A stretch of 64,000 nucleotides of DNA from Adineta vaga (GCA_021613535.1 CP075492.1:1922001-1986000), one strand, 5' to 3'. Counted from the stretch's first letter, positions 6,462-57,200 are shown. Notes: generated by a model from the letters alone, not told the origin. Numbers and translations are program-made.

Positions 6462-6844
6462 CACTCAGATTTCATGAATGTTTGTTTCTTCTTTGTAAAA
6501 TTAGCTTTTGTTTTTTTGTCTCACTGTTGAATAAAATAATGAAAATGAGTACCATGAAAAATAAGAATGTCATTTTAAAAATTGATATACTATGCCAGTG
6601 ATAAAACAGATTAACTTGTATATCTATAAGACACAAATCAATCTGCTTATCTCAACTTTTGCTTTTCAGCAACCGATTCTATATAATATTGAAAATGATG
6701 TGCTTGACGGTGAGGAAGACTACCACAATACAAAGTATTTCAATATTGTTGAAATAGATTATAAAGTGGCAAGTATCTAAACATAGGATCACGAAGATCC
6801 AGTATAGAATACTAAAGATCCACTATAAAGTAGACCATCTGTCG

Positions 6845-7615
6845 GGGTGTGGGTGTCTCTTCTCTATTCACACCCACACCCACCCACACCCTCGCTGTTG
6901 CCACACACTAACCTCCCTTTTTACAGCGCCATCTTTTACACCCCCAATTTGAGTGGTCAATCGCCACAAAGATTGTTCAGAATAAAGTCGCCTTTGTCTG
7001 CTATGCCTATATAATGAGGAAGCAATCTCAGAGTTATTTCATTCCACTTCCAACCATTCAATTATCCAATTCTTCTATGATGCAACAACCATCAACAACA
7101 ACTACAACATCATCATCAAGCATCAGCATGAGTACTTGTACTCGGGCGACGCAAACAGACGGGTTGTCTTCAACAGCCGAATTATATCAATTGGCTGCCC
7201 ATCTACATCGCTTGACAGGCGAATTGGTACGTGCATGTCAGGCTCAAAATGAAGCACAACAGGTCACTGAAATGACCATGAATGTTGTTGTTGCACCAGC
7301 AGCACGTGAGTACTAAACTTTTGTGTGTAATAGCATAGATAATGTTCGTTTTTCTAGAAACAGCTGTTGTCGAAATAGCAACCGTTCACAGCCTCAGCCT
7401 TGACGACGTAAATGTGGACTGTATGGTCGTCGTATCTCAAATGTCGAAGAGGCTCGAACAAATGATAAACATGGATGAGTCCGTAACAACACCAACACCC
7501 ATCTCATCACCACGTCCCCTCTCAATCCGCCCATGCCAATTGCCTCACCAGTTTTGGTCATACCACAACGCGCAAATAATAGCACAATTGCCCAACGCCT
7601 TTCGTTGGAGCCGCG
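6845..7615 (+). repeat. Near-identical partial duplicate of 25510-26356
   Basis: ORFs 7014 and 25755 are identical. By eye there are 2 substitutions plus a 76-bp deletion (25551-25626). The copy ends mid-exon at GCCGCG. Confidence 0.95.
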
Positions 7616-7669
7616 GGTGAGGGTAGGTGGGTGTGGGTGTGGGCCTGTCTTCTTCACCCACACCCTCAG
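7615..7669. repeat. Telomere-derived fold-back patch
   Basis: GGGTGAGGGTAGGTGGGTGTGGGTGTGGG-CCTGTCTTCTT-CACCCACACCCTCAG. Confidence 0.85.
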
Positions 7670-9089
7670 CTGAAAGACATCACAATCTACAAAAATTACG
7701 GTACCATACAAACAGAATGATAAGGTGAGCTACAGTTGTTAACAAGCTCTCTGCAACAAAAGATAATCATCTCTGATATTTTGGTACGAAAGTATAGCCT
7801 GAAAACGACCAGCTATTCTGATTCTATGAGATTTGACTAAAATTAGTCGAGAAAAATGAGTTCAAAATCTGGAAGTGAAAAATCTATAGTCTTCAGCAGT
7901 ATTAATTTCTAACATCTCGTCAGTTTTCCTCAAGCATAGAAAATTCATCAGACACGCTCCGCAACTCTCATCCTAGGATAGGAAAGTGTTGGTGGATGTA
8001 CAGAACTCGAAGTTCGATAATGAGTGGGAATTTATCACCTGTAAACTTCCAGGATCATTTCCCTTGATGGTTGAGATTATGAAAACCGTTAGAAATGAGG
8101 AAAATAGACAAGTTTCAGTATTTTAATAAATTTTTTAAAGCTAAAAGAAGACCGGTAAAAAACTGGTGAAGAATGGCCGATCCGGTTCCAAGTCTGATCA
8201 CTAATATTGGTCGATAAATCATTTAATCGATATTGATTAGTTCGATTATATGTTTTTCACATTGATTGATCCTATTCTCTAATTCTTTCATTATAATTCC
8301 ATTTGATGAATAAGTAGGTAAATCAATAGTTAAGAAACATGTATGTAATCCTGAATTAAATCGCAGTTATACTAGTAATACAACTGTGATTGTACGTATG
8401 TGCTTAAGATATTATAATTATTCAACACGAACATAAGAGTGATTCACCATAATCTTGGGTGAGGTTGGGATGTAGATGAGGGTGAAACGTGACGAGATAC
8501 TTACACGTATAGCCTCGCACACCCAAGATAATGCCACAATATACGTATAATGCATAGTTTTTGTCTCTTTTTCGTATTCAATACCGATCGCTCTGCACAG
8601 TGCATTTATTAGTAATTCGACGTTATTAGATACGTCAAAAGGACCTGTTGAGACCAACTGTATAACTTATACTCATTGTGTCAGCATCGTAGGTCCAGGA
8701 TTTGTATGCCTAGGTGTTTTTAATGGGTAAACTTGTTTACCGATAACTTAGCTTTAATCAGCTGTTTTTTTCTTTTGACTGTTCCAAAATCATTCATCTA
8801 TCAATATAAAATTGATGTAAAAAATACTTTTGTTGATGCTATTATTTTATGTGTGATCAAAAGAAAAGCAAGTACAATATAATATGTAGACAGAACGAGA
8901 AAAAAACCAATAAAGAGGAAATATGACGATACTGCGAAGAATTTTATGAGAGAAAGAGACAGTAAGTCATCAATAAAATATAAATAGTTCAAAATATTTT
9001 GTACTGTAATGAAAAAAAACAAATTATAGAGATAGTACTTCGATCGACTGTTGTTAAGGATGAGCGTGCGAATATACGGATTCAATTTT

Positions 9090-10010: not shown

Positions 10011-10599
10011 GGTGATATAATGAAAAGAAAACAGAAAAATATCTATGTGAATCTACTAAAAAAAATGAAAGAACTCTCAGAGCGAAATGATTCTTTTTAG
10101 ATTAATTGAAGCACATAAATTATATATAAGAGAAAATCTTTTTAATAACACAGAAAATAAGTATGATGTGCTTCATTGAACTATGGAATCAATTCAGAAA
10201 CAAAATTTGGTTGATTTACTTTTTTTCTACATAAATGATCACATCATTATTTATGAGTAGAAAAAGCAAATTTTTGTTTAGAATCTTCGTGAAAGTTGAA
10301 AGATGTACGATGGAAATGAAAATGTTACAAATGATCAATTAAAACAGTGTCGAACATGTTTAGATAATTGAAGAGCAGAAAATATATGTAGAATCGCTTT
10401 TAAATATTGTAATATTCGTTATTTAGTTTGAATATGTTATTAAGGGTGTGGGTGTGGGTGAGTTTTACCACCCTTACACACCATCAAGATACTCACATGT
10501 GTAATAAATAAAATATATTTTCGACGAGTAATTAGTGAGATTATTTTATTTTATTTTCAAAAAGATTACAACAACTTACAAACATTTCAAAGCATACCA

Positions 10600-10825: not shown

Positions 10826-11668
10826 TTTTTAGTAAAATTCAAATAAGAATGAAATCTTCAATACGTCAAAAGAAGAAAAACGAAATAGTTCAGTGTTGAT
10901 TTTATTGTCATTGTAAATTGAATTGCAATGAGAAAATATATTGTTATAGAATTGCATCTATATGCTTCGTATATATATATATATATATATATCATTTATT
11001 GCAATGATATATCAAAATTGAAAAATGAATAGTATAATCCTTTGATATTTGATAAAATGATTTTGTTTCCTTGCATTTTAGTATATTTAATCGTTTTTTT
11101 AACAAAAAATATTCGACAGAAAGTTATTAAATCTCATGAGGGTATGAGTGAAGATGTAGATGTTTTTTTTGTGACACTTATACCGTTCACATTCATCTTT
11201 TCATAAAATATTTTAGATTCATAAAAACAGACAAAACGAATTTTATTTTAAAAAATCGAATAGAATTTGTCTATGTGCAAAAGAAAATTTTGTTGATTAA
11301 GTTCTTAACATTCCAAAAAATATAATTTATTGTACAATTTCATAATCTAGAAATCATTGGAGTATATACTTTTGTCTTCTGTCGTCAAAAGATAACTTCT
11401 ATGGTCACATATATAAAATTCGCACAATTCAGAACAAATGTTTCTACATGACTACGTCGATCCAAATTTCAAGTTTGATCAAAGTGATAACCTTATCTAT
11501 GTACTATATTAATAGTACGATATTCTTACAAGGTAAAAACTCTATTTATTCAATAGAACTGCTAGTTGACAAATGATTCTCTATTGGTTATCCTTTTCTG
11601 TAAGTAGTATTATCATCAATGAATTCAATTTGTTTGTATAATTTAAAAACATAATATTTTCATAAAAT

Positions 11669-11719
11669 AGGGTGTGGGTGCGGGTATATCTTCTTCACTC
11701 ACATCTACACCCACACCCT
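11669..11719. repeat. Telomere-derived fold-back patch
   Basis: AGGGTGTGGGTGCGGG-TATATCTTCTT-CACTCACATCTACACCCACACCCT. Confidence 0.8.
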
Positions 11720-12476
11720 AGGTACTGTGATCTTTCTCGTATGGTTTTCTTTTTCAAAATCAATTTAACTGTAACAGACGTTCTAGTAAATAATTGCAGT
11801 TGAATAAAATATAATTAAAAAACCTAGCTATATCTATTCAATTAGCTTTCAGGAAAACTATCGAATAGTCGCGATATATCACCAATTTCTGAGCGATTTT
11901 CATGACATGGGCTTGTATTGGCATCTGCTACTAGGGGAAATAGTATTATACTAGATCTTTTTTAAACCAGAAAACAGCACGTATTATCATTTATCTCTAA
12001 TCGATCATATTTTGATATAACTGAAATCATGCCTATTATATTTATTACTTGAAAATCTTGTTGACAACCTTTCTTTACAACAATACAATAAATCATCTTT
12101 AGAAATTTACTCAAAAGAATATTCTAGAAGATTCTGAATATTTTTCATAAAGAAAATTAATTTAAATTACTTCCATATGAATTTTTTGCAACATTAAACA
12201 AAATTGTTCACGATACAGAAATCAATTTCTATAAAATATACTTCAATTTTAAAATGACTTTGTTTCGAAAAACTTATTTTCTTGAAGATTTTTTATTATT
12301 ATAATTAATTAATAACAACAATATCAACATTTTGATTAATCGTAAGAGCAATGTCAGTATTCATGATATATAAATACAGCAAGAGCCTTATCAAGTGCAT
12401 ACAAATCTTTTTGAGCTTTCTCTCAAATAATATTTGTGAACTTTAACAGATCTCTGTTATTCTGATTATTATTTTA

Positions 12477-14508: not shown

Positions 14509-16954
14509 GCCTTTGGGCGTTAGATTCTTTTCTTGAAAAGTATCATATAAAATTTTTGCAATATAACGCTTCTTAATTCATGGATAATAAAAGACGTTAG
14601 AGAACTGTCGTTGTATTCAAGATGCAGTGTCTCAGTATTCTCATCGAAACTACGTATTTATAATTCATTAAAAAATAAATTTGATTGACTAATAAAGATT
14701 ACAAGCAAATAAAAAATCGGTAAAATGTCGTTGTGTATGTAATATCTGGAGTGTGTGTGGTGGGTGTGAGGCTAGCAGCTACAACCTAGATTTTACTTCA
14801 GCGAAGGAGATCATCAGATAGTTTAGTTGAATTGATAATGATCACGTATGATCAAAATCAAAATCCAAAACTACGTAGTTACATATTTTTATATAATTAA
14901 TTTAGTTTTAAAGAAAATCAAATAAATTAATATGTAATATTAATTACATGACCTAGTGGATAAGGGTGTGAGATGTGTTGAGCAGCCATCTTGAGGGTGT
15001 CGGTTAAGAGTATAGGGTGACCCACACCCACACCCTATTTATAATCAAGAATAATTTAATCTTAAGGTTGATTTGGTATCTTTCTTGATGAAATCTTTTT
15101 ATTATGTATTTATTGTTATTTATTTATTTACGTATTTACAATTAAACATTTTTGAGAATGTGGATGTGATGTGACTTAAGGGACGATAAACCCACACCCT
15201 CAAGAGTGGAATCAGAAAGAAAACAAAAAAGAACGAAGACACTACAGATGGATGATAGGATAGTTATATCAGCAGGCAGTGTACCTATGAGAGCAGTGGT
15301 GGCTGACATCGTATTAGGTGTAGATATTGCTATCAATGTAGTGCATAAAAATAAATGACACAGAGGAAAATATTTTAGATTAAAAATAAACCGATAATGG
15401 CAGCATTAGTAGAAACAAAGTCGATGAGAAAATGTATAAACCATGTGGAAAGAGAAGTGATGCTTATCCGTTTGTTTTTAGTTATTATAATGATGGTTTT
15501 TTTTCTCGGTTGGATTGTCACGTTTCATCATTTTTGGATTAAAAAATTGTTTGCTAAAGCGAGATTCTCTTAGTTTGTGTCCTCAACGATATGAAAAATC
15601 ATGTGAACAAAATAGTTTTTATTCTAATTTCCTATTTTATTTCATACGACTATTATTATTTTTGTCGAAGAAAGTGAAACAAGTGAATTATTATTTTATG
15701 CAAAAAAGTGTCTCCTGATTTATTTGTTACATTTGATTATACATAATACTGTATAAATCATTCGAAAAGATTATATCAAAAACTGAAAGACAAGAAACCA
15801 TCGTTAGGTAGTATCGTTTGTAACTATACAACATCGTTTATAACTAATGAATGTAAGTGTGTGTGATAAATAGATATAATATCCACAGTCATCCTCAAGA
15901 TGGTTATTTTACTTCATTTTTCTGTTAAAAGAAAATTTTCTTAAAAGTAATTCATTTCTGTTCTACTTATATGGTAAGGAATATCTGGGACCATTTGTTA
16001 TATTTTAACCTTATTTCTTACTGCCATTAATTATATATTTTTCTTTTTGGCTTTGTTTTTCTCTCACTAGCAATTATATATATATATATATATTATATCA
16101 TACGGTTATCTTTTTCAACGTATTTTTCTCGCTCCAAAAGAAATTGACAGGATACATAAAAAACATTAATGTTAGTGTTGAAATGAAAAGAGTCATTATC
16201 GAAATCTAATTTTTTGCACATTACATTGGAGAGATCAATCAGAAATTTTTATTCATAGTTCACTTAGAATGAGATAGTTATAATACAAACAGAAATGTTC
16301 TTAAACAAAAGCAGGACATGCAGCAGTTCTGGTTATTCATCTGAAATTTGTTTACAATTATTTAGAAGCATGTTAGTTTAATGATATGGGGTGTGGGTGG
16401 GTGTGGGTGAGGATGTGGTTGTAGGTGTTAGATGCGTATAGTACCCACACCCACACCCACATCCGCAAATCCAAACTGGCGAACTTCCGGAATCTCAATT
16501 TATCAGTTAATTCAGGGTTAAGTCAGAAAACTTAACTTAATTTTAAGTTAAGCCAAATGCCTCACCCTAACCTAAAGTATATTCAATTTTAATCGGTGTC
16601 ATGATTGAACAGAATGTAATTATGAAATGGTTTGCTGATATTGGTATAGCTGTTTTTGATCATCATTTTATTGAAATGCCATTTTATAGATGGACAAATA
16701 AAAAATTACCGAAATGTCAATGTAGATAAAAATCTTTTTTTCTTCTTCTCTAAATCAAGCATTTCATAATCTATAAACAAGAAATAATCATTTTTATCGA
16801 TTTTATGTTATTCTTTAAATAAAATATTCGTGAAATAATAGTACGTGGCTATTTTAGATTGAAGATATTTAATAAATCATAGAATTAGATTAAACATGAA
16901 AATGACTTGATGGAAACAATTTACATTTTGTCATAAGTGTATGTCACCTATACG

Positions 16955-17026
16955 ATCTTGAGGGTGTGTGTAGATGTAGGTGTGAATGTATTCTTCTTCA
17001 CTCACACCCACACCCACACCCTCAAG
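16955..17026. repeat. Telomere-derived fold-back patch (both leaders present)
   Basis: ATCTTGAGGGTGTGTG...AATGTATTCTTCTT-CACTCACACCCACACCCACACCCTCAAG. No TSD. Confidence 0.9.
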
Positions 17027-17157
17027 CTTCAAGAATTTAAAAATTTTTACTTCTTTAAAAACCTTTTTATTGATCTATATCTTATCTGGAAATGTTCAAA
17101 CTTTAACCAGATGTATAATCATCAAAGATTCCTTATGAGAACAAATAATAAATGATT

Positions 17158-17212
17158 ATCTTGAGGGTGGGTGTGGGTGTGGGTACTGTTTCAATTTAAC
17201 CCACACTCTCAA
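17158..17212. repeat. Telomere-derived fold-back patch
   Basis: ATCTTGAGGGTGGGTGTGGGTGTGGGT...ACCCACACTCTCAA. Confidence 0.85.
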
Positions 17213-17462
17213 CACATAAAAAATTTTAAAGCGTTATTACGCGTTTGTTTAGATCCTTATTTGCACAGGTATGCACACCTTTGTTGCACGATACAACTAT
17301 CATTACAGATAAGGCCTTTATTCGTTTCATATTCTATATGAAAAAATGTTTCCAACATATACAAAATCACATACGAGTACTCTTACTGTGAATGAGGATG
17401 AATGATGAACAAACTTAAATAAATTCATAATAACTCTCAAAATTTCTTTTTCCAAGTTTCTT

Positions 17463-17897: not shown

Positions 17898-18450
17898 ACC
17901 AAACTCATTAAAAACAAAACCTGAGCATAAATGTTATTTTTTTAATGAATCTTTCTAATTATTAAACACTAATGTTAATGAATCATTGACAAAAATCGTA
18001 TTCTATAAAATGAAGGACTGGGGTTTGTCAAATTGAAACACGTCTTTTAAATTATAGTGAGATTGTAGAATAGATGTAGGTATAAATGAGTGTCAATAGA
18101 AAATATAACCTCACACACATCCTCAGTAACGTATATCTTTTATTCAACTTTGATCAATAAATCGATGAAAATCTTCTTGTGTTTGAGATCTGTCTGAAAA
18201 AAACATAATTGATTACATCTTTCTATGCGAAAAATTCAAATTCCTTAGAAGAAATCACGTTGAATCAATTTGGAAACAAATACTTTTGTCCTAAAAATAT
18301 GCATCAATAAAATATTCGTTTTTCTTGTCAGGTAGAGATATGTTGAGTGTTTAATTTAGTTTCTGTCAATGATTTTTTTCTATGTAGGTGTGGGTGTGGG
18401 TATGAGTGTGGACGATGGTGAGAGAGAAATTATAACACCCACACCCTCAA

Positions 18451-18828
18451 GATGCATCTGACCATTACAATCATACTGTTAAGACAGCACATAAAAAATA
18501 CAAAGCTGCTGCTCAGACAGCACTTCGAGAGTACAATATTGCTCTTACTGATTGTTTTACTCGTCTTACGACTAATACTACTACTGATGCTTCTGATTAT
18601 GCTCTTGATTATGGTTATGATGATAATGATTATAATATTGGTCCTGGTTGTATTCATCGTTATGACCGTTGTACTGCTAGCGATGCTGTGTGTTGTCAAT
18701 ATCCTGATTCTGATTATGGTAGTATCAATTTTGTTTGTAGTTATTTTCCTTTTGATGATTTTCCTCTTTGTGGTACTGGTCTCGATCCTTATCGTCTTTG
18801 TCGTTGGTATGGGAAAGTAAGAAGCTAG
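18451..18828 (+). pseudogene. 5'-truncated gene with a Cys-rich C-terminus (frame not in the ORF track)
   Basis: Open frame DASDHYNHTVKTAHKKYKAAAQTALREY...GCIHRYDRCTASDAVCCQYPD..FVCSY..LCGTGLDPYRLCRWYGKVRS* with strong NNT codon bias. It starts directly at the patch end CACCCTCAA|GAT. Confidence 0.7.
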
Positions 18829-19218
18829 GTATGTGCTGTTGAAAGACTCTTGCAGATAATTTTTTTATCAATCATACATTTTTTGAGATTATTATTTTGA
18901 ATGATTTTTTATTCTGAATAAATTTACTTTGAGGTAAAGCTTCAAGTGAAGTACATCCTGTCAAAAATCCAATGACCAGTGGCGTTCCAGTAAGAGGATC
19001 AGACCAATAATTAGTAATATGCAAGTTATAATTATAGAAATCATTGAAAAAAGTAACCACACTCGTTGAGTCGGTGAGGGTATGGGGGTGGTGCCGATGG
19101 GTGGATGAGGGTCTGGGTGTGATGCCTGTGGATTGATGAGGGTGGGGGTGCGAGTGTAGATGTCGCAAAAAGAGATGATTAGCGACATCTACATCTTCAT
19201 CCACCCGAATCGTTTTCA

Positions 19219-19800: not shown

Positions 19801-20063
19801 CATGTCTATCCTTCTATATTGAGAGTGTGGGGAAAGTGAACGAGAATGAGAGTAAGGAATGTGCAATGCTATAACTACTCATACTCGCTCACACCTACAC
19901 TCACATACTCAAAATGGTTCTTTCGTGCAATGTCTGCTATATTTGTGATTCAATGACAACAAAATGCTCGAACAGTTGTGCTTATAAATGTTGCTGCTTC
20001 AGGTATCTTTGAGACGAAAGCTCTTAATTACATCATAACTTCGAATTCGTCGTAATGATGCTA

Positions 20064-21241: not shown

Positions 21242-21300
21242 CATCTTGAGGGTGTGGGTGTGGGTGTGGGTGTGGGTGTGGGTGTGGGTGTGGGTGGGTG
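21242..21300 (+). repeat. Interstitial telomeric tract with CATCTTGAG leader
   Basis: CATCTTGAGGG(TGTGGG)7TGGGTG, directly abutting the 3' end of a minus-strand Penelope-like fragment. Confidence 0.95.
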
Positions 21301-22146: not shown

Positions 22147-22148
22147 TA

Positions 22149-25502: not shown

Positions 25503-25554
25503 ATCTTGAGGGTGTGGGTGTCTCTTCTCTATTCACACCCACACCCACCCTCAA
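25503..25554. repeat. Telomere-derived fold-back patch (type example)
   Basis: ATCTTGAGGGTGTGGGTG-TCTCTTCTCTATT-CACACCCACACCCACCCTCAA. Confidence 0.95.
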
Positions 25555-39724: not shown

Positions 39725-40312
39725 AACACTTGTTCGTTTCGAATAAATACGATTGGTATGAACAGATTCATTATCGTGAATGACAATGAAACTGTTATCA
39801 ATCTCTATATGCAACAGACAAACGAGATTAACACTTTCATAAGTTTACATTGCTATTATTATTACTATAAACAGTTGATCTTCTCATTGAACCAATAATT
39901 CATTCATGTTCGTGAAGAAATGTGTGGGTGAGGGTAGTAATCTCTTTTCTATGCACACCCACACCCACACCCACCCCACCGTTTCTTCGTTACACGAGGA
40001 AACAAAACCTTAGAACTTAGAAACGCAGATTCAAAATTGTCATAGGATTTTTAAAGTTCTTTCATAGTTAGTGTCATAATAGAAGCAGAGATAAGAACTC
40101 GCAAAGAAAAGCACCGACGTAATATCGTTTACCTGTGTATGCTGTGGCATACAATTCTCAAGAAGAGAGAGTGCTCGCGAGAAATAAGTTAACGTTATCT
40201 ACCTATGACATCTAAGAACTGCTTATCACAACTCGAAGAGGAAAATAGTTTCGTCATTCATTCCTCTAACAACTGACTTATAGGTACCATCCGTTGCGGC
40301 GCATTTTCATTG

Positions 40313-41230: not shown

Positions 41231-42553
41231 TATACGTGAACACGAATTCATTTCAGATGCTTTTCTCGTTGCAGTGAAATGCGTCTGACTTTATAATTCT
41301 AAAACAATAAATTCGAGTTTCTCTCACGACTCTTGGTCAATTAGATTCACTTTTTTCGCTGTGCCGGTGGATGTGGGTGACTGAAGAGAAAAAGGACACC
41401 CCCACACCCTTCGAATTATACGATAGGCTTGGTAGTGTGAACATAAAGCTAAAACCTGTTCGGGACTGTGTCGACGAGAAATACTGAAAAAAGCTTCGAA
41501 TCACGATGTATATCTAGAACAATCATTTAAACGATTTGCTTGTACGTTAATCTTCGATATTAATACGAGCATCGCTGACACCTCAATCCCAATAAAAAAA
41601 TATCAGTACAAAATGTTTCAGACGAAATTTCTCGCTTCCTTTCTGTACTGTATTATTGACCTACTGCGAATCGACATTTAGCATTCAGACTGGTTCAGTG
41701 ATAGTAGTAAGAATCGAGTCGTCAATCACAAGTGTTTGCATCGTGTTTCTCCTAATATTACCAGTACATATCATAAATTCGATTGTACAGCTTTGTTTCT
41801 TTGTCTAAATGAACTTTGAGACTGTATGTATCTCTCCTACACTGATTCGGCTTCCATTCGATTTATTTTAGACACTGATGAGCTCGACTTGTTTCGTTGA
41901 GTAAATTTCTTTTTCTTACCCTCATTAATAGACACAAATAAACTATGTTTCGTATTGTACTCTCGCAGAGACGATCCTGACAGACTCTTCTTGCTTAGTT
42001 TGAAGAAAGAATCGACGACGGCGTTTCTCTGGTAGTACGGATCATAGCGACGCAAAAACTCGAAGATTTTTTTTCTCAGGACCATCTGTTTTTATATCAA
42101 TATTCATTGAATTCCCTAAACAACGACAAAACAGGAATTCGGTTTTTCTTCTCCCGTTGAGATTTCTCTCCTCATCATGGCATGTTAATGTGAAATTAAA
42201 TATTGTTCTCCTTGTTTGAACAGCAGAATTTTTCTCAAAAAAACTCATTTATTAAGCAGATGTTTCTAAGGGTGAAATGCTTGTTGCCTGATCTCTTTTC
42301 TGATTTTGGTTGGATCTCAGATTGACAAAGTGTTCAATTTCAGATCAAAGTCTAATATGAAGCAGAACACAATAGAATTGTTTTAAGTAGTGTATCACAA
42401 AGAAGAAATTAAATCATCATCTGGCTTTTTTCCGAACTCTTTCAGACAAAAGTTACCCATTCGAACACAGTACAACGATCCAACACTCAATCAAGAACCT
42501 TGTACGGGTTTTGTGAATAGCAAATACATGAGAAAATACTTTCTTCGATTGTA

Positions 42554-45223: not shown

Positions 45224-46203
45224 TTAAAACGCAATGAAAGTGAAAGAAAATCATGAATGACAATAGTGAGTGTACTTGGATAATGAATCAGTCGCGTGTG
45301 ACTATTACACTTGTATTTTAATTTTAATTATTAAACAAACAATAAATAAAGCTGCTTGTTTGTGCGCTTGAAATGTACGATACTGATATGTTTTGCTAAA
45401 AATTTTTAATATGTGACGATGGGGATCAAGCAAGTGGAAAAAATCAAAGGAACTTCTAGAAAACTATTAGGAGACCACGCTGACATTCTGTATAGAAATA
45501 GAAAAACTCTAAAAGGCTCTCTTTCATAACGCCAAACCAGCAAAAGTGTTATATGATGGTGAGAAAACTCTGTGAAGTTGTTTCGAGTAATGTTGAAACA
45601 AAGGCTCCTTTCTGATGAAACTGAACCAGAAAAAGTTTGTAGTTTTGATTAGTGTTGTGCTATAGAAAGTTCTATTAAATAGTGATCAATTCGCAAAGAT
45701 TCTTTGTTCAATATTGCCAATGTAAATAAATTTCTTCCACTTTTACAACATTTCTCTCGAGTTTGTAGTGTGAATTCACTTGCATATCATAAGACATATA
45801 TCATATGAATTAGAAATCGAATGTGTTTCTTACATCATGAGCAAATCTAAAATATAATCTGTATAGCGCATTGTACCATGTGTGTGATTTCGTTTTACCA
45901 TTGCGTTATATACTAATTTGTAGAATTCCACAGGTTAGAATTATAGAAAACTTAATTACCAACTTTCAAGCATTAGCCTATCGATCACTTATTTATTATC
46001 AGTTAAAATATACTGTATACTAGCTAAATCTATTATGAGCATTTATCTACTTCCTACCAATACGATTTTTTTACACTATGGTTTTAATTCAATTGTAACG
46101 CTTCATACAAGAACTTAAACGTTGAGAAAAAAGCGTTTCATGATTCTGACAAAGAAAGTTAGTGTTTCTCACAAAGACATAGGTGAGCAACACCCTCAAG
46201 ATG

Positions 46204-46622: not shown

Positions 46623-48055
46623 CTAAATAAAAATGTTAGGTTGTCACAAAAACATGCAAGGCAAAGGTGATTATTTTATTAAAAGTCTATCTAGAGGATC
46701 GGGGTAAACTCGAAATTAGCTCAGTAGTAGACCACAGGGTCGGTTGATGGGAAAATTATTCTCGTTTACAGATTGCAAATAATTGAAGTCACTTAAAAGC
46801 CGATAATAAAGAAATTTTCTTATCGTCTTATAGAACACGTTATAGATTTGAAAACTTGTTGAATTTAGAATCTTCGAGATATCCAAACTTTCTAAAATTG
46901 AATATAGAGTTCTTACTGTGCAACAATACAAATTTCAGTTTAAATAGGCTCCGATATTTTTAGCATTAAGGAATTTTAAGTATCTAGAAATTTGAGAATC
47001 ATCGACATCTTCTAATTATGAGAATTTTAAAATGCTAGAGAATAGTGAAATAGTAGTCTTATTTTAGATATGGATGAAAGCACGACAATGACAATGTTTT
47101 GTTTTTATCTGAATGGTTTGTGGCAGTCTCAGCTACTCTACTTTCGTCTCTGGCATATTTGAAAGAAAGCAAACAATGTTAATGACATCTGAAAGAGTTC
47201 ATAATGACAATAAAAGGTAGTCTAAATGTCCAGTGTTGATCTGAATAGTGATCCATGTGGTCTGAACCGAATCGAAAACCGGCGACTTTCGATCCGGTTC
47301 GAATGACATGGAAAATTTTTCTATAGTCAAACACTTATATTTTAATTTGTCTTTTTGACAGACCGCACTAACTCATAGTAAGAAAGCTATAAGCTTAGAA
47401 CAGTTGATCAGAAAAAATGAAAAATTGACGGACGTGATAGAATAAATAAATTCTCAGTATTCTGTTGATATCTTGGGCAATTGTCATTGTTAAGACTTAA
47501 TCTTTTTCCCAGAAGATTCGCTATAAGATCCTGTATAAAATGATATAGTCTATTGAATCAATACGCTTTTGTTCGTTGCTGAAGCATAACTTCTCCGAAC
47601 AATGATATTATATAAAACTTAGTGATAGTGTAGGTTAATGTGTGGTTCTGGATGGTATGGTATGTCATTCCCTTTCTAACAACCATACCCATCTAAACTC
47701 AAACGAATGTTCCATTCACTCTCAAAGTTAAATTTGTTTTCTCGTTTCAAATATAGATCAATTTGCTAAATTCATCAAATACCCTACATTCACATCCTCA
47801 ATAAATCTAATTTGATCATGTAGTCATTTGTTCAGTAAGGATGTTGGCGTGAATGTGTATGTGTGACAGAAAAGCAACACTCAATCCCACACTCTCATGT
47901 TGACATCCTGTACTCCTGAGTTTTTACTCGTAGTTAATCATTAAAATAACTCTTTCGCTTCGTTAACCTTGATTTAGTCGTTTAATAGAAATCTAGTCAA
48001 TTTTCAATATTGACAAAGATGAATAAATAAACACTGGCGTATCCACAAAGTATCA

Positions 48056-48364: not shown

Positions 48365-49697
48365 GTTGACTGTAAATATTCTGTTAGCAAGAACGTAGGA
48401 GATTGTTTACAATCATTTAATTCCTAGAAAAAGATAGTTTATACATTCGAAGTATTTTATAAAATATTCTTTCAAAGAACTTTATATTTTTCTGGGGAAT
48501 TCATACGTGAGCAACATATATCTCTCTTTAATAAGAATGGTTTTTTTTCGAAACTCATGTTTCATCTTTAACATGTCTCAAGAAAATGAGCAGATATCCT
48601 GAGATGTTACAGCTTGGTAAGTAAATGCTTTAGGATGAGAATGAGGGTCAGTGTCGGTGAGGATGTCAGTGTGTAAGTAAGGGTGTATAAGTATGGTGTG
48701 GATGCAGTTGCGAGTATGAATGTCGCTGTAGGTGTAGTATATTTATCTTACCACGCGCTCACACCCACACCCTAAATTTCACTCGATTTTTGCATTGCGT
48801 GCACCTTAATATAATGCTTTAGAAACGAAATTTTTTTCTTACCTTTCAGCAGCAATCATAATACGTGAATGAAGCTGCACGCTGTATTTTTACCTGTTCT
48901 TCAGAAAAATAAACAATCAGCGTATGATATAAAAAACAACTGTCACTGACGCAATGAATCATAACTATTACTCATCGTACAAATAATCGTCTCAATATTG
49001 ATTATGTTATTTATACATCCAATGTAGAACTAACTATCAAACTTGATACATTAACTGAAACTGCAGCGATTGTTGGATTAAAATTTTCTTCTAATACAAA
49101 TAATTCATCAATACAACCTATTCTTATTTCACAAGATTCAATATTACATGCTAAATGGGACGATCTATGTATTACAATTCCTTTGAAACCAAATAATGTA
49201 TCAATATTACGTAAACTTCCAAAATTTGTTTGTTGAAAATTTTCTTTTTGAGACAAATAATGATTTGAAATAAAACTTTTGATCATTGGTAAAGCGAAAT
49301 GAATAGCTGCGAGGATTTCTTTTTGGATGTGATTATAACAGTAATGGAAATATTCATCAGTATTTTTATGCGTTTTCTTTCCTTTTCTTAATAAAACTTT
49401 GATGACAATTTCTGAGAAAGTAGAAAATAATATTTTAAAAAGGATGAGAAATGATTCACAGAAAATCTATGTAATTTTTTCTTAGTAATGAATATCTAAT
49501 AAAGTCATCTGTCTGATTTAGTTAACAACGCAATTGTTTGCTACATAAACCTGTTCTTTATATTATTGTTCATGATGCACTTTTTTCTATATAAACATAT
49601 TCTTGAAATTAAAAGAGACGTAAAAGGCTTCTTTTCATTCTTCAAAAAAACATTCTCCTGACATATACTTTCTTTTACAGGGTAATATCGAGTTAAA

Positions 49698-51805: not shown

Positions 51806-51895
51806 ATCTTGATTGTGTGTGTGTGGTGTGGGGTCTCTCTATTCACCCACACCCACACCCACACCCACACCCACACCCACACCCACACCCACCCT
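51806..51895. repeat. Telomere-derived fold-back patch with a long (TGTGGG)n arm
   Basis: Minus strand: AGGGTGGG(TGTGGG)7TG-AATAGAGAGA-CCCCACACC..ATCAAGAT. Confidence 0.95.
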
Positions 51896-52612
51896 TTGTA
51901 ATGTCGTTAGATTCAATCGTTCTGCTTGATTTTTAGCAATGTTTATACCTTCAATCGATGTATCAAATCCTACTACATCATAACCTTTTTGTGCAAGCCA
52001 GATAGAATTTCGTCCTTGACCCATAGCAATATCTAATACTTTAAAATTATTTAATGATGGATTGTATTCTTCGATAAATTGTTTCAGAAACTTATTTACG
52101 TTTGAATTAAAATTTACTAAAGACTTTGATTTCTTAAAATAAGTGTTCCATGTTGCCAGTGATGAATAATATTCTTGTTCATTCAGACTTCTCAATAGCC
52201 AAACAGTTTCATTCATATTATCTATTCCAAATATTCTAAGTTTGTTATATATATATAACTGACCTTTATCTTCTACTAGTGGTGTATAATGAATATATCT
52301 ATCAAATGTTAAATAAGAAAAATTGTAATACATTGATGTATGAACAATATATATTTCCCATGTATTTTTAATTGCTCCTGGTGGATGATCTATCATATTA
52401 TTAATGATTTTATATTTAATTCCAGTAAAGAAATGTTCTAATTCTATAATACAATTTTTTGCATCATTATAATTCATTCGATATTTGATTTGTAAATGAC
52501 TGATAATATATTGAATATCATTCATTGGAATTTGAACTTCGTCATAAGATTTCGATAAAATTCCGTATATGAAAAATATACAATTCAGAAGTAGATTAAC
52601 TATTATCTTCAT
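51896..52612 (-). pseudogene. Signal peptide, GRDP/DUF1399-like region and class I SAM methyltransferase, truncated by telomeric repeats
   Basis: VLDIAMGQGRNSIWLAQKGYDVVGFDTS (motif I and post-I). The frame becomes VGVGVG before the rest of the fold. Intronless. Confidence 0.8.
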
Positions 52613-53125
52613 GACAACTCTCTCTTTTTTTTTATGAAAACTTGTATGTCTTATTAGTTACAGATAATGTTTTACAGGACCATAATGTATCTGTAGAATG
52701 ATATAAATAAATTAGAAGAAACTCGAGAAAAACAATATTGAGTATGTGTAAGTAATATATCAATAAATCGATACTCTCATCTATTTTTAACGTAATTCAG
52801 TTTTATTCGCATTTTCATCTCCTTACAAATTCAAAGGAAGTAAAAGAAAAACCCTTTTTCTGAAGTATATTCAAGTGTGTATCAATAAATAAATCTTAAT
52901 ATTTGAGGGTGAGGGTGTGGGTGAAGAAGAAATACATTGACGCCAAGGGAGAAGAGGCGAGACTTCAAATACTTCCGGAAGTATTTCAATCGTGAAGTCT
53001 CGCTTTTTCCCCTTCCTTGACTCACATCTCACACCCTCACTCTCTATTCTATTCTGTAAAACTTTATGTACAAAGGAAAGTGTTTATTTTGTTTTAAAAT
53101 CTTCAACTATAATTTCATTTATAGT

Positions 53126-54297
53126 TCATAGTTTACTTTTTTCTTGTAATACTGGTGTTGCCATAATACTATTCACGATATCTTCAGTCAACAACATACC
53201 ACTATTCCATGTACGCTATAAAATAAAGATTTATTTAGAAAAAGAAAATTCTGCACGATAACATACCACAAAAGTAAAATTATCATCGACAGTATGATCA
53301 CGTGCATAATTCAAATTGATTTTTGAACCTTGTACAGCTATAGAACTCTTTTGACCAATAACATTTCCTAAAGATATTGCTGCATCAAGTAAAGCTTCAC
53401 GACTATCAAATACACGACTAGAAATATTAAAACAAGATGAAGTTATAGAAGACAATTTTCATCAATATTCTTTACCTAATAAGTCCAATTTGTTGTGCTT
53501 CGTTAGTATCGAATTTTCGTGATGTATAAACAAGTTCACGAAAGAGATTATGATCAGTAATTAATTTCGGTAAAATTTGAAGAGTACCAACATCAGCTGC
53601 TAAACCCATATCGACTTCCTAAAGATATATATATATATATATATATTTAATATTCGATAATCAATGTATAAGAATACTTTGATAGAAAATGTTGTATCAC
53701 GTGTACTATAACGAATATCACAACAAGCTGATAGATCAATACCAGCACCGAGACAAAAACCATGAATAGCAGCTATGATTGGTTTTTCACACTTGAAAAT
53801 CAAAACTTTATTGAAAAAAGGGAAAGTTATCGTTTTAGTTTAATATTTACTTTATCTACTGCTCTTAAACATTCTTGGATTCGTTGTATCATATTTCGAT
53901 TATGTAATACTTTTTGTGCTATATCATCAATTTCAATAGATTCAGCAGCAGCATTTGATAAATATGTTATATCAATACCTGAACAAAATATCCTCAAAGA
54001 AAAATACGTTATTTACAAAGAAAGAAAAATTTTACCAGTACTAAATGCTCTACCATTACCAGTTAATACTATAACTCGACATTCCTTTTCTTTATTTAAT
54101 TGTTCAAAACATGTTTTCAAGTCACTTGTTAGTCAAAGATATCATTTGGATAAATATATACTAGCAGAAGAAATGTCTTACTCGAATAATTGTTGATTCA
54201 TAGCATTGAGTTTGGTTGGTCGATTTAATTCAACCAGAAACACATGAGGCTTTGGTTGACTTACTTTCAAGGTTTCATATGCGAGTAATAATGACAT
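53126..54297 (-). CDS. ECH1: Delta(3,5)-Delta(2,4)-dienoyl-CoA isomerase (crotonase family), multi-exon
   Basis: VELNRPTKLNAMN, KPIIAAIHGFCLGAGIDL..CDIRY, AADVGTLQ, AVQGSKINLNYARDHTV and C-terminal SKL (PTS1). Confidence 0.9.
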
Positions 54298-57200
54298 AGT
54301 TCGAACTGTGTGATAATCTAAAGTAAAAACAAAAAGAACATTTTATTTAAGATACGAGTCATCTGTGTGTGAGAGCTACTACGAGGACAATATTGTCTGA
54401 TTGGTGGTAGTTTTGGCTAATGAAAAATTTCAAAAAAAGAAGGCAGCGCTTGTTTATTTTTCGCTATTAATATTAAAATTTCATGCTTTCATAGAATAGA
54501 TCATTTTGTCAGTGGGTATTTTAATATAATGCGGATGAAAGAAAAAAAAACAATCTCATTGTTGCTCCCGTTACAAAGATGAATATTAACTCTATTGTTT
54601 TATCTTGTCTGTTCTGTTGAATTTTGTTTCAAAGAGAACAAAATCATTTGAATTCAACGAAAAGAATATAAGAAAGACGAGAACGTGGACTTTAAAATGG
54701 ATCACAGATGTTAGACCAAATGAAACATATTCGAAAGGAAGCGTTTTTATGCCAGCAGATACACACGGATTTTAAGTGATCGATCTTCTCAATAAAAGTC
54801 CAAATAGTGAACATCGAGATAAATGGTGAGAATCACACTATGTTACCATGTTTAATACTAAGAGAAATAGATAAAGTGTATCTTGATATATTCTACGGTC
54901 ATTGTTTCTGTAGGAGTTGTTCATCAAAATGAATATGGAAAAGATTCAATAATCCAAAATTGACCAATATCATATCATGAAACTCGAAAACAGAATATTG
55001 ATTCAATTCTTAGACATCGTCGAATTATGTTTCTTGGTGACCGACTAAATGATGATATCGTTCTACCTGTACGACTCGATGAATGTCATGCTCATGTTTC
55101 ATCTACGATTCTTTATTCTCAACACGATGTTTATACACCTCCTGAACATTTTCAGTATAATTCATCCTTTCGTTCAACAAATCATAGAATCAAGTCACTC
55201 TTACACTGTCAAGTAAAACCTCAATCTTTCAGAAAATGTCCAGAAACGCTGCTAATAACAACGCAGTCGAATGGGTGGTATCCGATAAGACAGTAGTTAT
55301 TCCATATGGTCTTTTCATTGGTATTTTTTGTTGAGTAGGGCGAGCGTGTCACTAGAGAAATGAAAGTCACACCCTCGCACACACCCTAAATTACAGTAAA
55401 GATCTTTGATATACAATCAAATATCAAGAAAAATATAAAGAACGTGATGAAAGCAAATTATTTAATAAAACTAATAAAGATTTCTTTTTTCATTGACGTT
55501 AATACTTTATTGACGAGAATATTTAATACGTGTTAAATTATTGATAAAGAGTGACAAATTAATATTTAACGACACTAGAATAGAAATATATTTTATCAAA
55601 ATTGTAAGAAAAAAGATTTGTTCGAAATGTTTTTTTCGAATATTTTGATCATCTTTCTTTTACATAAAAACAACGAAATATCAGGTAAAACTTTATTATT
55701 GTAGAACTAAGATCTTCTAAAATACATTGATTTAGGTTTTTCTTTTCATCGACCAAAATTTTGTTCGACTATAACTTGGAATCCAAATGCAATTACATTT
55801 GCTACTCGAGCAACTCTTGGTTTAAATCCTTATAGTATATTTATAAATACAAATAATACATTGTTTGTTCTTAGTCGAGATGAGAATCAAATGTTAGCAT
55901 TGTTTGATAATAATACTAATCCAACTGAACTCTTTTCTGGTATTTTATCAAGACCTTTGTCTCTTTTCGTTGCAAATAATGGTGATATTTATGTTGATTC
56001 AAATGAACAAGTTTATAAATTGATATGGAATATAAGAACTGTTCATACTGTTATGTATGTTAAAAATTCATGTTCAGGTCTTTTTCTCGATATTAACGAT
56101 ACACTCTTTTGTTCAATGGCTACTCAAAATCAAGTTGTAAAACAATGGTTAGGTGATCCTATCATCAATTCGACTGCGGTGGCTGCGGGTACAGGTTTTT
56201 CAGGTAATGCATCGAATATGCTTGATATTCCTCAAGGAATATTCGTTGATGAAAATTTCCATTTATATGTTGCGGATTGTGGAAATCATCGAATTCAACG
56301 ATTTCCAGAAGGGCAACTTAATGGAATTACAATATCAACAGGAAATATTTCACTTCGTTGTCCAACTGGAATTACATTAGATTCTGATGGATATTTGTTT
56401 ATTGTCGATCAAAGTAATAATCGTATTATTGGATCTGGATCATATGGATTTCGATGTCTAGTTGGATGTAATGGAGAAGGATCAGCATCTGATCAATTAG
56501 ATTATCCACGTAGTCTTAGTTTTGATACATATGGTAATATGTTTGTGACTGATTATGCTAATAATCGAATTCAAAAATTTCTATTATTAAAAAATTCTTG
56601 TGGTAAGTTAAAGAATTTATATAATAAGATAAATATTTGAGTAAAGAATATCAATTTATTTTGGGTGTGGGTGTGGGCGTCCGCGATTGGCTAGTGTTCA
56701 CTCCACATACACACACCCACACTCTCAAACAGTATGTTAGAATTTTTTGAAAGATTATTTAAAAAGAATGAGACTAAATGAAGTTTATTGTTTGTTCATT
56801 TTAAATTCCATACTTTAATTTAGATGAAACAACTCATACAACTATTAATTCAGCAACAACCAAGGACTTCGCAACGACAATCGATTCAGCCACAACTATG
56901 GATTCCGCAACATCTGTCAATTTTGGAACAACAATCAAATCAACTACAAAAAAGATACATTCAAGAACAACACAGATTCAACAAGGTAGATTAATGTGAT
57001 ATTCGTTTCTATTGATATAAATAAGATTATATTTTCTAATAGATAGAACAACTATTAAATTGTCAACAGCAAATATTTATAAAGGTTTACTTTTATATTT
57101 TTTAAAAATGATAAATAAATTGAAAATATTTTCTTGATTTAGATCAAGCAATAACTGAAAGACATTCAATAGAAAGTCAAGAAGGTTTGTTTGAAAAGAT

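Follow-up and report, generated by a model that had tools for sequence, protein, structure and literature searches.

Opposed telomere-type arms at seams of unrelated DNA on chromosome 3 of Adineta vaga

Chromosome 3 of the bdelloid rotifer Adineta vaga contains, at 1.92-1.99 Mb of the chromosome assembly, a stretch of 64,000 nucleotides (the window) interspersed with short patches in which a G-rich telomere-type arm, a short loop and a C-rich arm follow one another. A preliminary description of the sequence had proposed that each patch is the scar of a break, left when two ends were extended by RNA-templated telomeric repeats and then joined. The locus raises the question of how such patches arise, and whether they reflect the repair of broken DNA.

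Census and architecture of the patches

A search of the window for GGGTGTGGGTG with at most one mismatch yielded 71 matches compared to 0.09 expected from shuffled sequences, about 800 times chance. A rule-based scan of the window returned 18 two-armed patches with a G arm, loop and C arm as well as one-armed tracts, and the total comes to about 20 two-armed patches and about 10 one-armed or decayed ones (Table 1; patches are named after the positions first given for them). The previously described family of about 30 patches is real, with telomere-type hexamers present at all 23 of the 23 positions listed as clear copies. The list nevertheless requires some correction, as 21242 has only a G tract and 36846 only a C tract, one arm is decayed in each of the copies 10442 and 15191, and 46182 may owe its hexamers to chance. 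The nine copies listed as decayed are plausible, yet weak.

Genome-wide, the G-then-C order occurs 830 times as opposed to 5 times for the reversed control, and among neighbouring arms in 296 kb of the A. vaga genome 32 pairs are ordered G-then-C, three G-G and none C-G or C-C. Arm lengths vary independently, as had been stated, with G and C arms nearly uncorrelated in length (r = 0.21, n = 18 patches), and in the complete copies L003 and L004 the variant repeats of one arm have no mirror image in the other. The patches fold into stable hairpins (z-scores -2 to -6). Two features go beyond what had been noted before, namely recurrent families of spacers and a defined outer end, ATCTTGAGGG.

Because their arms are repeated, many patches interrupt short-read contigs, as might be expected if the patches were artefacts of contig joins. 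However, patches 14987, 15191 and 18384 lie within independent contigs from 2013 and 2022 that show 0-2 differences, which refutes an artefact for the patches so spanned, and the same architecture is present in the assemblies of other species and in metagenome contigs; an assembly origin is scarcely credible. The reads examined contained no new or polymorphic patch.

Table 1. Patches and associated features of the window, with positions counted from its first nucleotide.
Feature	Position	Strand	Remarks
Patch 6844	6837..6893	.	CT-rich (F3) loop; copy of patch 25503 and its right flank
Patch 7615	7613..7669	.	Seam of segment B (6871-7615) and segment C (7626-10238)
Patch 8452	8452..8560	.	Decayed; inside segment C
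Patch 10442	10444..10500	.	Decayed C arm
Patch 11669	11668..11720	.	F3 loop; 157-bp repeat (89% identical copies elsewhere) begins exactly at C-arm end, 11719
Composite 14987	14940..15037	.	Minus-strand reading: G arm, F1-type loop, tail ending CCCTCAAG
Patch 15191	15150..15206	.	Decayed G arm, clear C arm ending CCCTCAAGAG
Patch 16388	16387..16461	.	31-nt loop
Patch 16955	16955..17028	.	Complete, both termini ATCTTGAGGG...CCCTCAAGCT, F3 loop; gene fragment 16570-16922 stops 33 nt short of it
Patch 17158	17158..17215	.	ATCT leader, C arm partly decayed
Patch 18384	18385..18453	.	C arm ending CCCTCAAGAT; spanned by independent 2022 contig
Composite 19066	19066..19206	.	Decayed G-rich region, internal hairpin; inside transcribed sequence
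Patch 19819	19820..19960	.	Decayed; in 487-nt minus-strand intron 19678-20164, spliced out in RNA contigs
Tract 21242	21242..21298	+	ATCTTGAGGG(TGTGGG)7, no C-arm partner
Penelope-like/Terminon-type element, 3' end	21299..21510	-	Hammerhead-like core and C-rich tail
Patch 25503	25503..25557	.	Complete, F3 loop
C-rich arm	25580..25634	+	Decayed; native start of segment B, also in chr4 copy
Patch 29685	29683..29746	.	Complete, F3 loop reversed
Patch 30005	30005..30044	.	Short, partly decayed
Patch 30731	30731..30800	.	Decayed C arm ending CTCTCAAGGT
Patch 31059	31059..31119	.	Decayed G arm, F3-type loop
Patch 32140	32140..32204	.	Abuts 5' end of repeat unit 32210-36861; left arm with ATCT leader, right arm without TCAAGAT end
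Multi-copy repeat unit	32210..36861	+	Co-oriented ORFs; C-rich tail CACACCCACACCCTCA at 36846-36861
Patch 39921	39921..39980	.	F3-type loop; directly after pentapeptide-repeat ORF
Patch 41366	41366..41409	.	Short, F3 loop reversed
46182	46182..46200	+	Lone CCCTCAAGAT in coding-like repeat; doubtful, possibly chance
Patch 47838	47838..47897	.	Decayed
Patch 48632	48632..48775	.	Long, decayed
Patch 51806	51806..51894	.	ATCT-led decayed G arm, loop TCTCTCTATTCA, tract (CCCACA)7CCCACCC
Methyltransferase gene	51896..52612	-	Broken off after codon 239 of 349
Patch 52903	52903..53045	.	106-nt loop
Patch 55331	55331..55386	.	Decayed
Patch 56661	56661..56728	.	Directly after NHL-repeat ORF

Junctions, truncated sequences and copied flanks

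Segments A, B and C of the window match paralogues on chr5, chr4/chr3 and chr6 at 94-99% identity, and this homology ends in or at patches. Of 49 homology-block ends 9 lie no more than 15 nt from a patch (2.8 expected, p ~0.002), and no clear patch is spanned by a high-identity paralogue block. Several ends are truncations of sequences that continue in the paralogues, with the G arm following directly. The interrupted methyltransferase gene encodes a product 100% identical to residues 1-239 of the A. vaga protein G3KGV5; the telomeric repeats (TGTGGG)n start directly after codon 239, so placed that the C tract of patch 51806 abuts the gene. Elsewhere, the copies of window sequence on chr6, L030 and L007 stop earlier than the window does and then pass directly into TGAGGG. 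In agreement with the preliminary description, none of the eight complete copies carries a target-site duplication (TSD) and the flanks are unrelated to each other, while the clean empty sites it had named as evidence to the contrary are absent from the paralogues found. These data support the conclusion that the patches are seams of unrelated DNA and not clean insertions.

The claim that each patch was made at its own break holds in part: truncated ends followed by a G arm argue for it, yet for at least two patches of the window the patch and one of its flanks were copied as a whole, namely 7615 along with segment C and 6844 along with segment B. Patch 7615 has its inner G arm, loop and C arm in common with the chr6 paralogue, but not its outer G arm and left flank. 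At patch 25503, the left flank is paralogous up to 25504 to a sequence on chr3 at 18.6 Mb, while paralogues of the right flank lie on chr4, and compared to patch 25503 the copy at 6844 has lost about 80 nt between two direct C-rich repeats. Patch 8452 lies within a 98% identical block common to the chr6 paralogue and is therefore an old scar, passed on by passive duplication. The 205 nt that precede patch 10442 are missing from segment C on chr6, where a fresher patch with a similar loop is present.

The outer terminus and the loops

Reading upstream from TGAGGG, the bases that complete the fixed outer end of the arms are T (82%), C (67%), T (68%) and A (62%), with background beyond; many patches lack one or both termini and begin directly at the truncation point. 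Because the ATCTTGAGGG start is constant, an RNA template is implied for the arms. Tract 21242 joins non-telomeric DNA to the 3' end of a retroelement, in which a hammerhead-like core (CTGAAGAG..CACGAAACGCGTC) is located about 170 nt before the C-rich tail ending CCCTCAAGAT. The GAAACGCGTC motif of this element recurs in genome-wide matches to the hammerhead pattern (14 matches at about 10 loci, most of them near chromosome ends), and the patch terminus is found on four hammerhead-adjacent tails genome-wide. The arms had been taken for plain mini-telomeres, a view contradicted by a terminus that equals the end of C-rich tails beside Athena/Terminon-type hammerhead ribozymes. The hammerhead-adjacent tails that end in CCCTCAAG also admit another reading, in which Athena joined a neotelomere made by telomerase, and therefore do not settle the source RNA of the leader. 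No reverse transcriptase (RT) gene was found in the window. The multi-copy repeat unit has copies elsewhere that are 72-94% identical and share its 3' end; no RT domain was found in it, and one of its ORFs resembles the rotifer-rich family DUF8422.

The loops form at least five unrelated, recurrent families rather than random filler, and their boundaries are sharp on both sides. Family F1, with a 17-nt loop, counts 101 copies (53 forward, 48 reverse; control 0) with a conserved first C-arm repeat, CCTACA, and has unrelated flanks on both sides in 12 of 12 copies inspected; neither a hammerhead-bearing nor a longer master copy of F1 was found in either orientation. Resemblance to any of the 11 hammerhead-to-tail spacers found is limited to 1-2 of 56 loops, and in patch L007 6243 both ends of the loop resemble those of the hammerhead 3' product predicted for the neighbouring element. 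F3-like loops together with the leader also occur in Rotaria sordida, Rotaria sp. Silwood2 and moss-metagenome contigs, a distribution that fits a transposon tail no better than a conserved host RNA, for example telomerase RNA. The loop of patch 52903, F3-like beside the C-rich tail (left arm, minus-strand reading) and with a strong internal helix further in, represents a longer version of the F3 template. Composite 14987 consists of two tandem spacer-plus-tail units, since in minus-strand reading CCCTCAAG is directly followed by ATGGCTGCTCAACACA and a second decayed C tail; these units and a G-x-ATCT-G case seen besides them would be the product expected of end-to-end template jumping. The spacer is not arbitrary. 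Its families are conserved, one with at least 100 copies and some common to other bdelloids, and the simple joining of two tails is therefore an incomplete account.

Related systems and possible origins

The internal order of a G-strand array followed by a C-strand array is also found where telomeres fused head to head, as at the ancestral fusion site of human chromosome 2. A fusion site, however, is a single long, degenerate array that has neither a conserved loop nor a constant non-telomeric outer end. Athena/Terminon elements, which are 5'-truncated and capped, carry reverse-complement repeats next to a hammerhead and use these to attach to G overhangs (PMC6431247, PMC8557442). The likeness comprises a C-rich reverse-complement telomeric 3' tail beside a hammerhead ribozyme, free 3' ends at telomeres or breaks as primers, extreme 5' truncation, subtelomeric location and host genes between units (PMC6431247, PMC8557442, PMC5072296), and tails of this kind in the A. 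vaga genome end in the complement of the patch terminus CTTGAGGG. In contrast, known Athena/Terminon products are arranged head-to-tail with telomeric tracts in one orientation, whereas the tracts of patches face each other (32 G-then-C versus 3 G-G), and the patches are only 50-80 bp long, have no coding part and no hammerhead, and their main loop families are unlike the hammerhead-to-tail spacers found. Penelope-like elements typically leave inverted 5'-truncated copies (PMC8557442, PMC3846280): the inverted copy adjoins a direct one such that both outer ends are 3' ends of the element, and tandem partial copies occur as well. The window has both the inverted form (patches) and the tandem form (14940-15037). 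Such copies are known, however, for kilobase-scale endonuclease-bearing elements with TSDs, whereas patches correspond to the last 30-50 nt only, without a TSD and between unrelated DNA. TERC-ITS, in which telomeric repeats and a retrotranscribed piece of telomerase RNA lie at vertebrate double-strand breaks (PMC8537989, PMC2246262), share with the patches short interstitial telomeric repeats plus a templated non-telomeric piece, a single step at a break, the lack of a TSD and a reading as RNA-templated repair. They are rare (41 loci in 30 genomes), single-armed and proven by orthologous empty sites, while patches occupy hundreds of loci, have two arms that face each other and fall into several loop families. 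New deletion breakpoints in irradiated or bottlenecked A. vaga lines carry telomeric repeats and Athena fragments (PMC13564844), which is the proposed first step of patch formation seen in real time, albeit as capped chromosome fragments and not as rejoined seams with two opposed arms and a loop.

With moderate confidence, we favour a reading of the patches as junction scars, produced by RNA-templated tailing of free ends (from Athena/Terminon RNA or telomerase RNA), head-to-head joining and re-copying. In a first step, which the seams document in outline, free ends would result from breaks in genes, eroded chromosome ends or 5'-truncated copies, and a G-rich tail would be copied onto them from an RNA with the 3' part (CCCACA)nCCCUCAAGAU, a template that would explain the constant start ATCTTGAGGG together with the variable, stuttering repeat number. 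As the same terminus is found on C-rich tails beside hammerhead ribozymes, the arms most likely derive from the RNA and reverse transcriptase of Athena/Terminon elements, which are endonuclease-deficient Penelope-like elements, telomerase RNA being the main alternative. The second step is one that we infer: one end would be extended a short fixed distance past the tail, giving rise to the loop, and would be joined head to head to a second G-tailed end, for example by template jumping, and the resulting G arm, loop and C arm would equal the inverted 5'-truncated pair of Penelope-like elements, shrunk to 50-80 bp. In the third step, for which two patches provide examples, existing patches would serve as homology for later G-tailed ends, with loop, far arm and adjoining segment co-copied via break-induced replication or reverse transcription of read-through RNA; loop families would thereby spread and the mosaic would be built. 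Against this reading stands the rarity of the direct order G, loop, G, the canonical Athena product, and the known Athena attachment mechanism alone therefore does not yield patches. Further points against it are the few loops that resemble hammerhead-to-tail spacers, the lack of a hammerhead-bearing F1 master copy, the negative search for an RT gene in the window, the F3-like loops and leader of Rotaria and moss metagenomes, and the lack of new or polymorphic patches in the reads examined.

Telomerase alone could produce ATCTTGAGGG as the first-round product of a long telomerase-RNA template and F3-type loops as read-through 5' of the template, with two neotelomeres fusing tip to tip. The start register, constant at otherwise unrelated ends, agrees with this, as do the long pure (TGTGGG)7-8 tracts at 21242 and 51846, the conservation of leader and F3-like loops beyond Adineta that is expected of a host RNA, the long F3 copy 52903, which has no hammerhead but forms a strong helix at about 35 nt from its tail, and the vertebrate precedent of TERC-ITS (PMC8537989, PMC2246262). 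Yet a few telomerase RNA genes would not account for at least five unrelated loop families, tails adjoining hammerhead ribozymes bear the same terminus, and 34 low-GC metagenome hits included no conserved non-patch locus with CCCACACCCTCAAGAT; we consider telomerase alone rather unlikely. A further candidate is a tiny non-autonomous fold-back retroelement, which would be transcribed as a unit, cut back to its hairpin and then, by an Athena-type RT, copied into any free end, in which case F1-F5 would be parasite lineages mimicking repair scars. The abundance of F1 in both orientations with conserved loop and CCTACA, unrelated flanks and no longer master, the sharp loop boundaries, defined termini and stable folding, and the presence of arm sequences in RNA contigs from other loci would suit such an element. 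It is an unlikely explanation nonetheless: arm length and variant repeats differ within one family and between the arms of one copy, which means that each patch gains its arms afresh instead of inheriting them within a copied unit, many patches start at a truncation point without one or both termini, and no known mechanism sets such RNA ends.

That few patches were made anew, most seams stemming from ectopic recombination, single-strand annealing or break-induced replication between existing patches that act as dispersed homology and fragile sites, is suggested by paralogue homology beginning inside the G arm, both for segment C and for the 6844/25503 pair, by the 80-nt deletion between direct C-rich repeats, and by an earlier proposal of break-induced replication from another telomere for Athena-bearing regions (PMC2861651). 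It is improbable as a general origin, leaving unexplained both the genes and segments cut at arbitrary points with a new G arm directly after and the unrelated flanks on both sides of all 12 F1 copies inspected (of about 100). A MITE, that is, a miniature inverted-repeat DNA transposon with telomere-like terminal inverted repeats, would be in keeping with the inverted, defined termini ATCTTGAGGG...CCCTCAAGAT, the short length and high copy number, and a genome whose TE content is dominated by TIR transposons (PMC8494291). The lack of TSDs and empty sites, flanks from unrelated sequences, highly variable arm length, the many copies with one terminus only and the closure of a hammerhead-bearing retroelement by the same terminus make it very improbable.

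Of the original proposal of RNA-templated break-repair scars, the junctions, the truncations followed by tailing and the RNA-templated start have withstood analysis, while plain telomere arms have not and the simple joining of two tails is incomplete. A dedicated repair system is unproven, and the data are accounted for no less well if retroelements and telomerase act on free ends and leave the patches as a by-product. Athena at breaks, neotelomeres and inverted 5'-truncated copies of Penelope-like elements, the general ingredients of such a process, have been described before. The window is a subtelomeric patchwork of unrelated DNA, and the patches at many of its seams are probably the footprint of the healing and rejoining of broken or uncapped ends.

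Architecture and setting of the patches

The genome comprises 100.8 Mb in six contigs, with the window on contig 3; the chromosome-level assembly of A. vaga has been reported to carry the TGTGGG repeat and to have subtelomeres in which transposons and foreign genes abound (PMC8494291). Within the window the patches are situated between ordinary genes, which encode NHL-repeat proteins, a GPCR, a pentapeptide-repeat protein, a lectin-fold protein, a short-chain dehydrogenase and a piggyBac-type transposase. The motif GGGTGTGGGTG with at most one mismatch occurs 71 times in the window against 0.09 expected, and telomere-type hexamers are present at all 23 sites that the preliminary description had named as clear copies; the one at 46182 is probably due to chance, and the sites named as decayed copies are plausible but weak. 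A rule-based scan of the window returned 18 two-armed patches in addition to one-armed tracts. Every patch contains a (CCCACA)n arm, that is, the C-rich reverse-complement telomeric tail that is a 3'-end feature of Athena/Terminon elements, and the loop separating it from the G-rich arm mostly measures 13-25 nt. Genome-wide, GGGTGTGGGT-N(0-50)-ACCCACACCC matches 830 times per strand, mostly near chromosome ends, as compared to 5 matches for the reversed control.

An assembly artefact was rejected, as the patches at 14987, 15191 and 18384 are spanned by contigs assembled from independent sequencing runs of 2013 and 2022; no 50-nt presence/absence variant is listed at patches in these read contigs. 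Rfam assigned no family at gathering score, the only matches on patches being sub-threshold and miRNA-like hairpins, and its hammerhead models gave no match. We also considered an intron or introner origin. No splice joint lies at a patch border, which is weak evidence because the RNA cover of the patches is low; the only two splice joints in the RNA runs (19406>19468 and 19677>20165) belong to ordinary minus-strand introns. The longer of these contains a decayed patch, and old seams are apparently tolerated inside introns.

Features of the window and loop families of the patches
Feature	Window position (strand)	Observations
Segment A	4557-6661	Matches chr5 (94%)
Segment B	6871-7615	Matches window 25607-26356 (99%) and chr4 (96%)
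Segment C	7626-10238	Matches chr6 (98%)
Tandem units	14940-15037	Spacer of the hammerhead-to-tail type, ATGGCTGCTCAACACA, plus tail, in tandem with an F1 unit
Long intron	19678-20164 (-)	Unusually long (487 nt); spliced in RNA contigs of two runs
Retroelement fragment	21242-21510	On the minus strand, hammerhead-like core (CTGAAGAG...CACGAAACGCGTC), ~170 nt, then (CCCACA)7CCCTCAAGAT
Repeat	22148-23678	Copies on chr4, chr5 and chr3
Inverted repeat within this repeat	22484-23083	Near-perfect; arms of 269 nt (98% complementary) around a 62-nt spacer; resembles a fold-back transposon, not related to the patches
Y RNA-like YrlA match	31247-31351 (+)	Rfam, sub-threshold (35.9 bits, E = 4e-4, gathering score 69)
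Repeat unit with several ORFs	32210-36861 (+)	C-rich 3' tail; 8 or more diverged copies, located on chr1, chr3 and chr6; one ORF similar to the rotifer-rich family DUF8422; neither an RT nor any other Pfam domain found
piggyBac-type transposase ORF	43482-45122 (+)	Intact-looking, 546 aa; DDE_Tnp_1_7, E = 5e-83; copies of 84% identity at the very ends of chr3 and chr6
Truncated methyltransferase gene	51896-52612 (-)	Pfam domains half-length
Short repeats	58409-58694, 59548-59744	Dozens of copies, 84-90% identical, on all chromosomes including central regions; probably MITEs
Loop family F1		TTAAGAGTATAGCCTGA
Loop family F2		TCTCGATTCTTTATATCAA
Loop family F3		CT-rich; TGTCTCTTCTCTATTCA, TATCTTCTTCA; dominant family in the window
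Loop family F4		AGTATTACATCTATCTAAC

Patches at the borders of duplicated segments

We searched the stretch from 5 to 60 kb of the window for paralogues in its own genome. This stretch is a mosaic of blocks with paralogues elsewhere in the genome, none of which spans a clear patch, and 9 of 49 block ends fall within 15 nt of a patch where 2.8 would be expected (p ~0.002). At 7615, for example, the window copy of segment B ends and a patch follows, while its source copies continue as ordinary sequence. Segment C is joined to a patch of which the inner G arm, the loop and the C arm are common to the window and chr6, together with 2.6 kb, whereas the outer G arm and everything to the left of it differ. 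The chr6 copy of segment C is itself cut short relative to the window, with TGAGGG... directly following; the same holds for the copy of segment A at L007 and for that of 48972-49727 at L030, both loci outside the window. A comparable truncation affects the methyltransferase gene, which is probably of foreign origin and ends after codon 239 of 349 directly into (TGTGGG)n. The truncated product is 100% identical to the A. vaga protein G3KGV5 (G3KGV5_ADIVA), and the full-length protein is encoded at another site or on the other haplotype.

Free ends that lie at arbitrary points gain a G-rich tail whose start is constant, seams combine two tails facing each other with a loop specific to its family, and some patches have been copied along with one flank, the homology breaking within the G arm. 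The absence of a target site duplication, as had been claimed, held for 8 of 8 complete copies, and among all paralogous blocks of the 5-60 kb stretch we found no empty site with co-linear flanks, the blocks ending at the patches. A MITE or other TIR-type DNA transposon, which would leave a fixed-length duplication and empty sites in paralogues, was rejected on both counts.

Outer terminus and loop families

In order to characterize the outer end of the patches, we tallied the bases upstream of the outermost TGAGGG (n = 60). They are T in 82%, C in 67%, T in 68% and A in 62% of cases, followed by background, and therefore define the terminus as ATCTTGAGGG, a leader that often has a C before it. 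The same terminus ends the retroelement fragment at 21242-21510. At L007, TGAGGGTGTGGGTGTG and an antisense core, CTGATGAGGATCC...GGATCGAAACGCGTC, come after the truncated segment A, and genome-wide about 10 loci, most of them near chromosome ends, carry GAAACGCGTC followed after ~13-24 nt by a C-rich tail. Four hammerhead-adjacent tails in the genome end in CCCTCAAG, and the terminus CCCTCAAG(AT) is common to such tails and the patches. The published 3' end of Athena/Terminon elements consists of a hammerhead and reverse-complement telomeric repeats, which the hammerhead-adjacent tails match (PMC6431247, PMC8557442). The hammerhead motif is present in the long copies (21299-21510 and L007 4139-4260); directly upstream of the tail in short patches none was found, and no RT domain, of the Athena type or any other, was found in the window ORFs tested. 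That the leader belongs to a retroelement RNA does not follow from the shared terminus, because the same junction arises if an element attaches to a telomerase-made neotelomere.

The loops fall into recurrent families, occurring in both orientations. With at most 2 mismatches, the F1 loop is found in 101 copies (53 forward, 48 reverse) against 0 in the control; it has sharp boundaries and a conserved first C-arm repeat (CCTACA), and among the 12 copies inspected none has flanks related to those of another. As judged from the sequences, both the outer end and the loop of the patches are templated. Arms belonging to one loop family vary from copy to copy and are not mirrored within a copy, which indicates that the arms were remade while the loop was copied. 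We rejected the idea that one arm was copied from the other by snap-back, since the arms do not mirror each other's variant repeats and their lengths, in agreement with the preliminary description, vary independently (near-zero correlation, r = 0.21).

To relate the loops to the elements, we compared 56 loops with 11 spacers running from the hammerhead cleavage site to the tail. Spacer lengths (~13-24 nt) agree with those of most loops, but only 1-2 of the 56 loops match any spacer. At L007 6243, a 38-nt loop resembles at its start and end the 3' product predicted for the adjacent element. An F1 master copy with a hammerhead end within 30 nt was sought in both orientations and none was found. 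F4 loops (L007 5040-5062, L013 2165-2187 and the metagenome locus L066) contain AGTATTAC, a sequence similar, possibly by coincidence, to the nonanucleotide at which circular Rep-encoding ssDNA viruses are nicked. Terminons, too, reportedly code for Rep proteins (PMC6431247); the likeness is kept as a lead only, because homology breaks in arms and not in loops.

Patches of the same kind occur in other bdelloids. At loci of Rotaria sordida and Rotaria sp. Silwood2, G-loop-C patches bear the leader ATCTTGAGAG and enclose F3-like loops, and similar patches exist at the loci of the methyltransferase homologues of A. ricciae and Rotaria, which are not syntenic with the window. Scanning metagenomes for CCCACACCCTCAAGAT yielded 34 low-GC matches, many from one set of samples; a contig labelled human-gut metagenome (L092) was excluded. 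These metagenome patches have the same build, F3-, F4- and F5-like loops and unrelated flanks. Two metagenome loci (L070 and L073) carry long (CCCTCA)n arrays ending in CCCACACCCTCAAGAT, the terminus often being followed by AG rather than G, and TGAGGG may be the main repeat of some environmental bdelloid-like genomes that keep the same outer terminus.

Possible routes of formation and implications

We favour the reading of the patches as junction scars left by RNA-templated tailing of free ends and subsequent head-to-head joining. One end would be extended beyond its tail by a short fixed distance and joined to another tailed end, template jumping being one possible means. End-to-end jumping would be expected to yield products such as the tandem units at 14940-15037 and a case of the form G-x-ATCT-G. 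Subsequent G-tailed ends could anneal to the C-rich strand of patches already in place and continue copying from there. Penelope-like elements show an inverted, 5'-truncated arrangement that the patches resemble in miniature (PMC8557442, PMC3846280), and the telomeric repeats and Athena fragments reported at new breakpoints fit the proposed mechanism (PMC13564844). In Athena/Terminon elements all telomeric tracts run head-to-tail in one direction, whereas neighbouring tracts in the 296 kb sampled are ordered G-then-C in 32 cases, G-G in 3, and C-G or C-C in none.

This orientation, a G-strand followed by a C-strand array, is shared with telomere-telomere fusions, in which, however, nothing templated lies between the arrays, while the patches have recurrent loop families and a constant outer leader. 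A related rival, suggested by the vertebrate TERC-ITS analogy (PMC8537989), would have telomerase RNA read through before tip-to-tip fusion. Conservation of leader and loop across bdelloids is compatible both with an old retroelement lineage and with a host RNA, telomerase RNA for example; among the 34 low-GC contigs no conserved gene-like non-patch locus that could be a telomerase RNA candidate was found. The patches might also be a self-propagating hairpin retroelement, and complete copies do fold as DNA hairpins (z-scores -2 to -6), or they might have spread mainly through recombination between patches. A more far-reaching possibility, which we regard as improbable, is a conserved bdelloid route of RNA-templated end joining, in which short C-tailed RNAs (F1-F5) would serve as adaptors copied onto G-tailed ends by a telomerase-like RT, after which two healed ends would pair and be sealed. 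Some of these adaptors would be conserved across genera without a retroelement master copy, and the route would build subtelomeres, with the foreign genes captured in them, piece by piece, one patch corresponding to one joining event. Of the earlier proposal of a telomere-derived break-repair system, the patches themselves proved real and the core idea is partly supported; they are best filed as a variation on Athena/Terminon and neotelomere biology and not as a new system, and opposed tracts have possibly been described before.

The patches may bear on how bdelloids rebuild shattered chromosomes and on how foreign and duplicated genes gather in their subtelomeres. If the patches are seams of RNA-templated healing and rejoining, they provide a sequence-level marker of joining, apparently present in hundreds per genome and with the same architecture in other bdelloids. 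Past joining events could then be counted, dated and mapped, horizontally acquired genes could be examined for seams at their borders, and the signature could be searched for at newly formed junctions in irradiation and desiccation data sets already available. If they are instead a self-propagating hairpin parasite, they would represent an unusually small type of retroelement. The ATCTTGAGGG leader and the F3 loop are a concrete lead to the bdelloid telomerase RNA. For Athena/Terminon biology, the seams would mean an extension from end-capping to possible end-joining.
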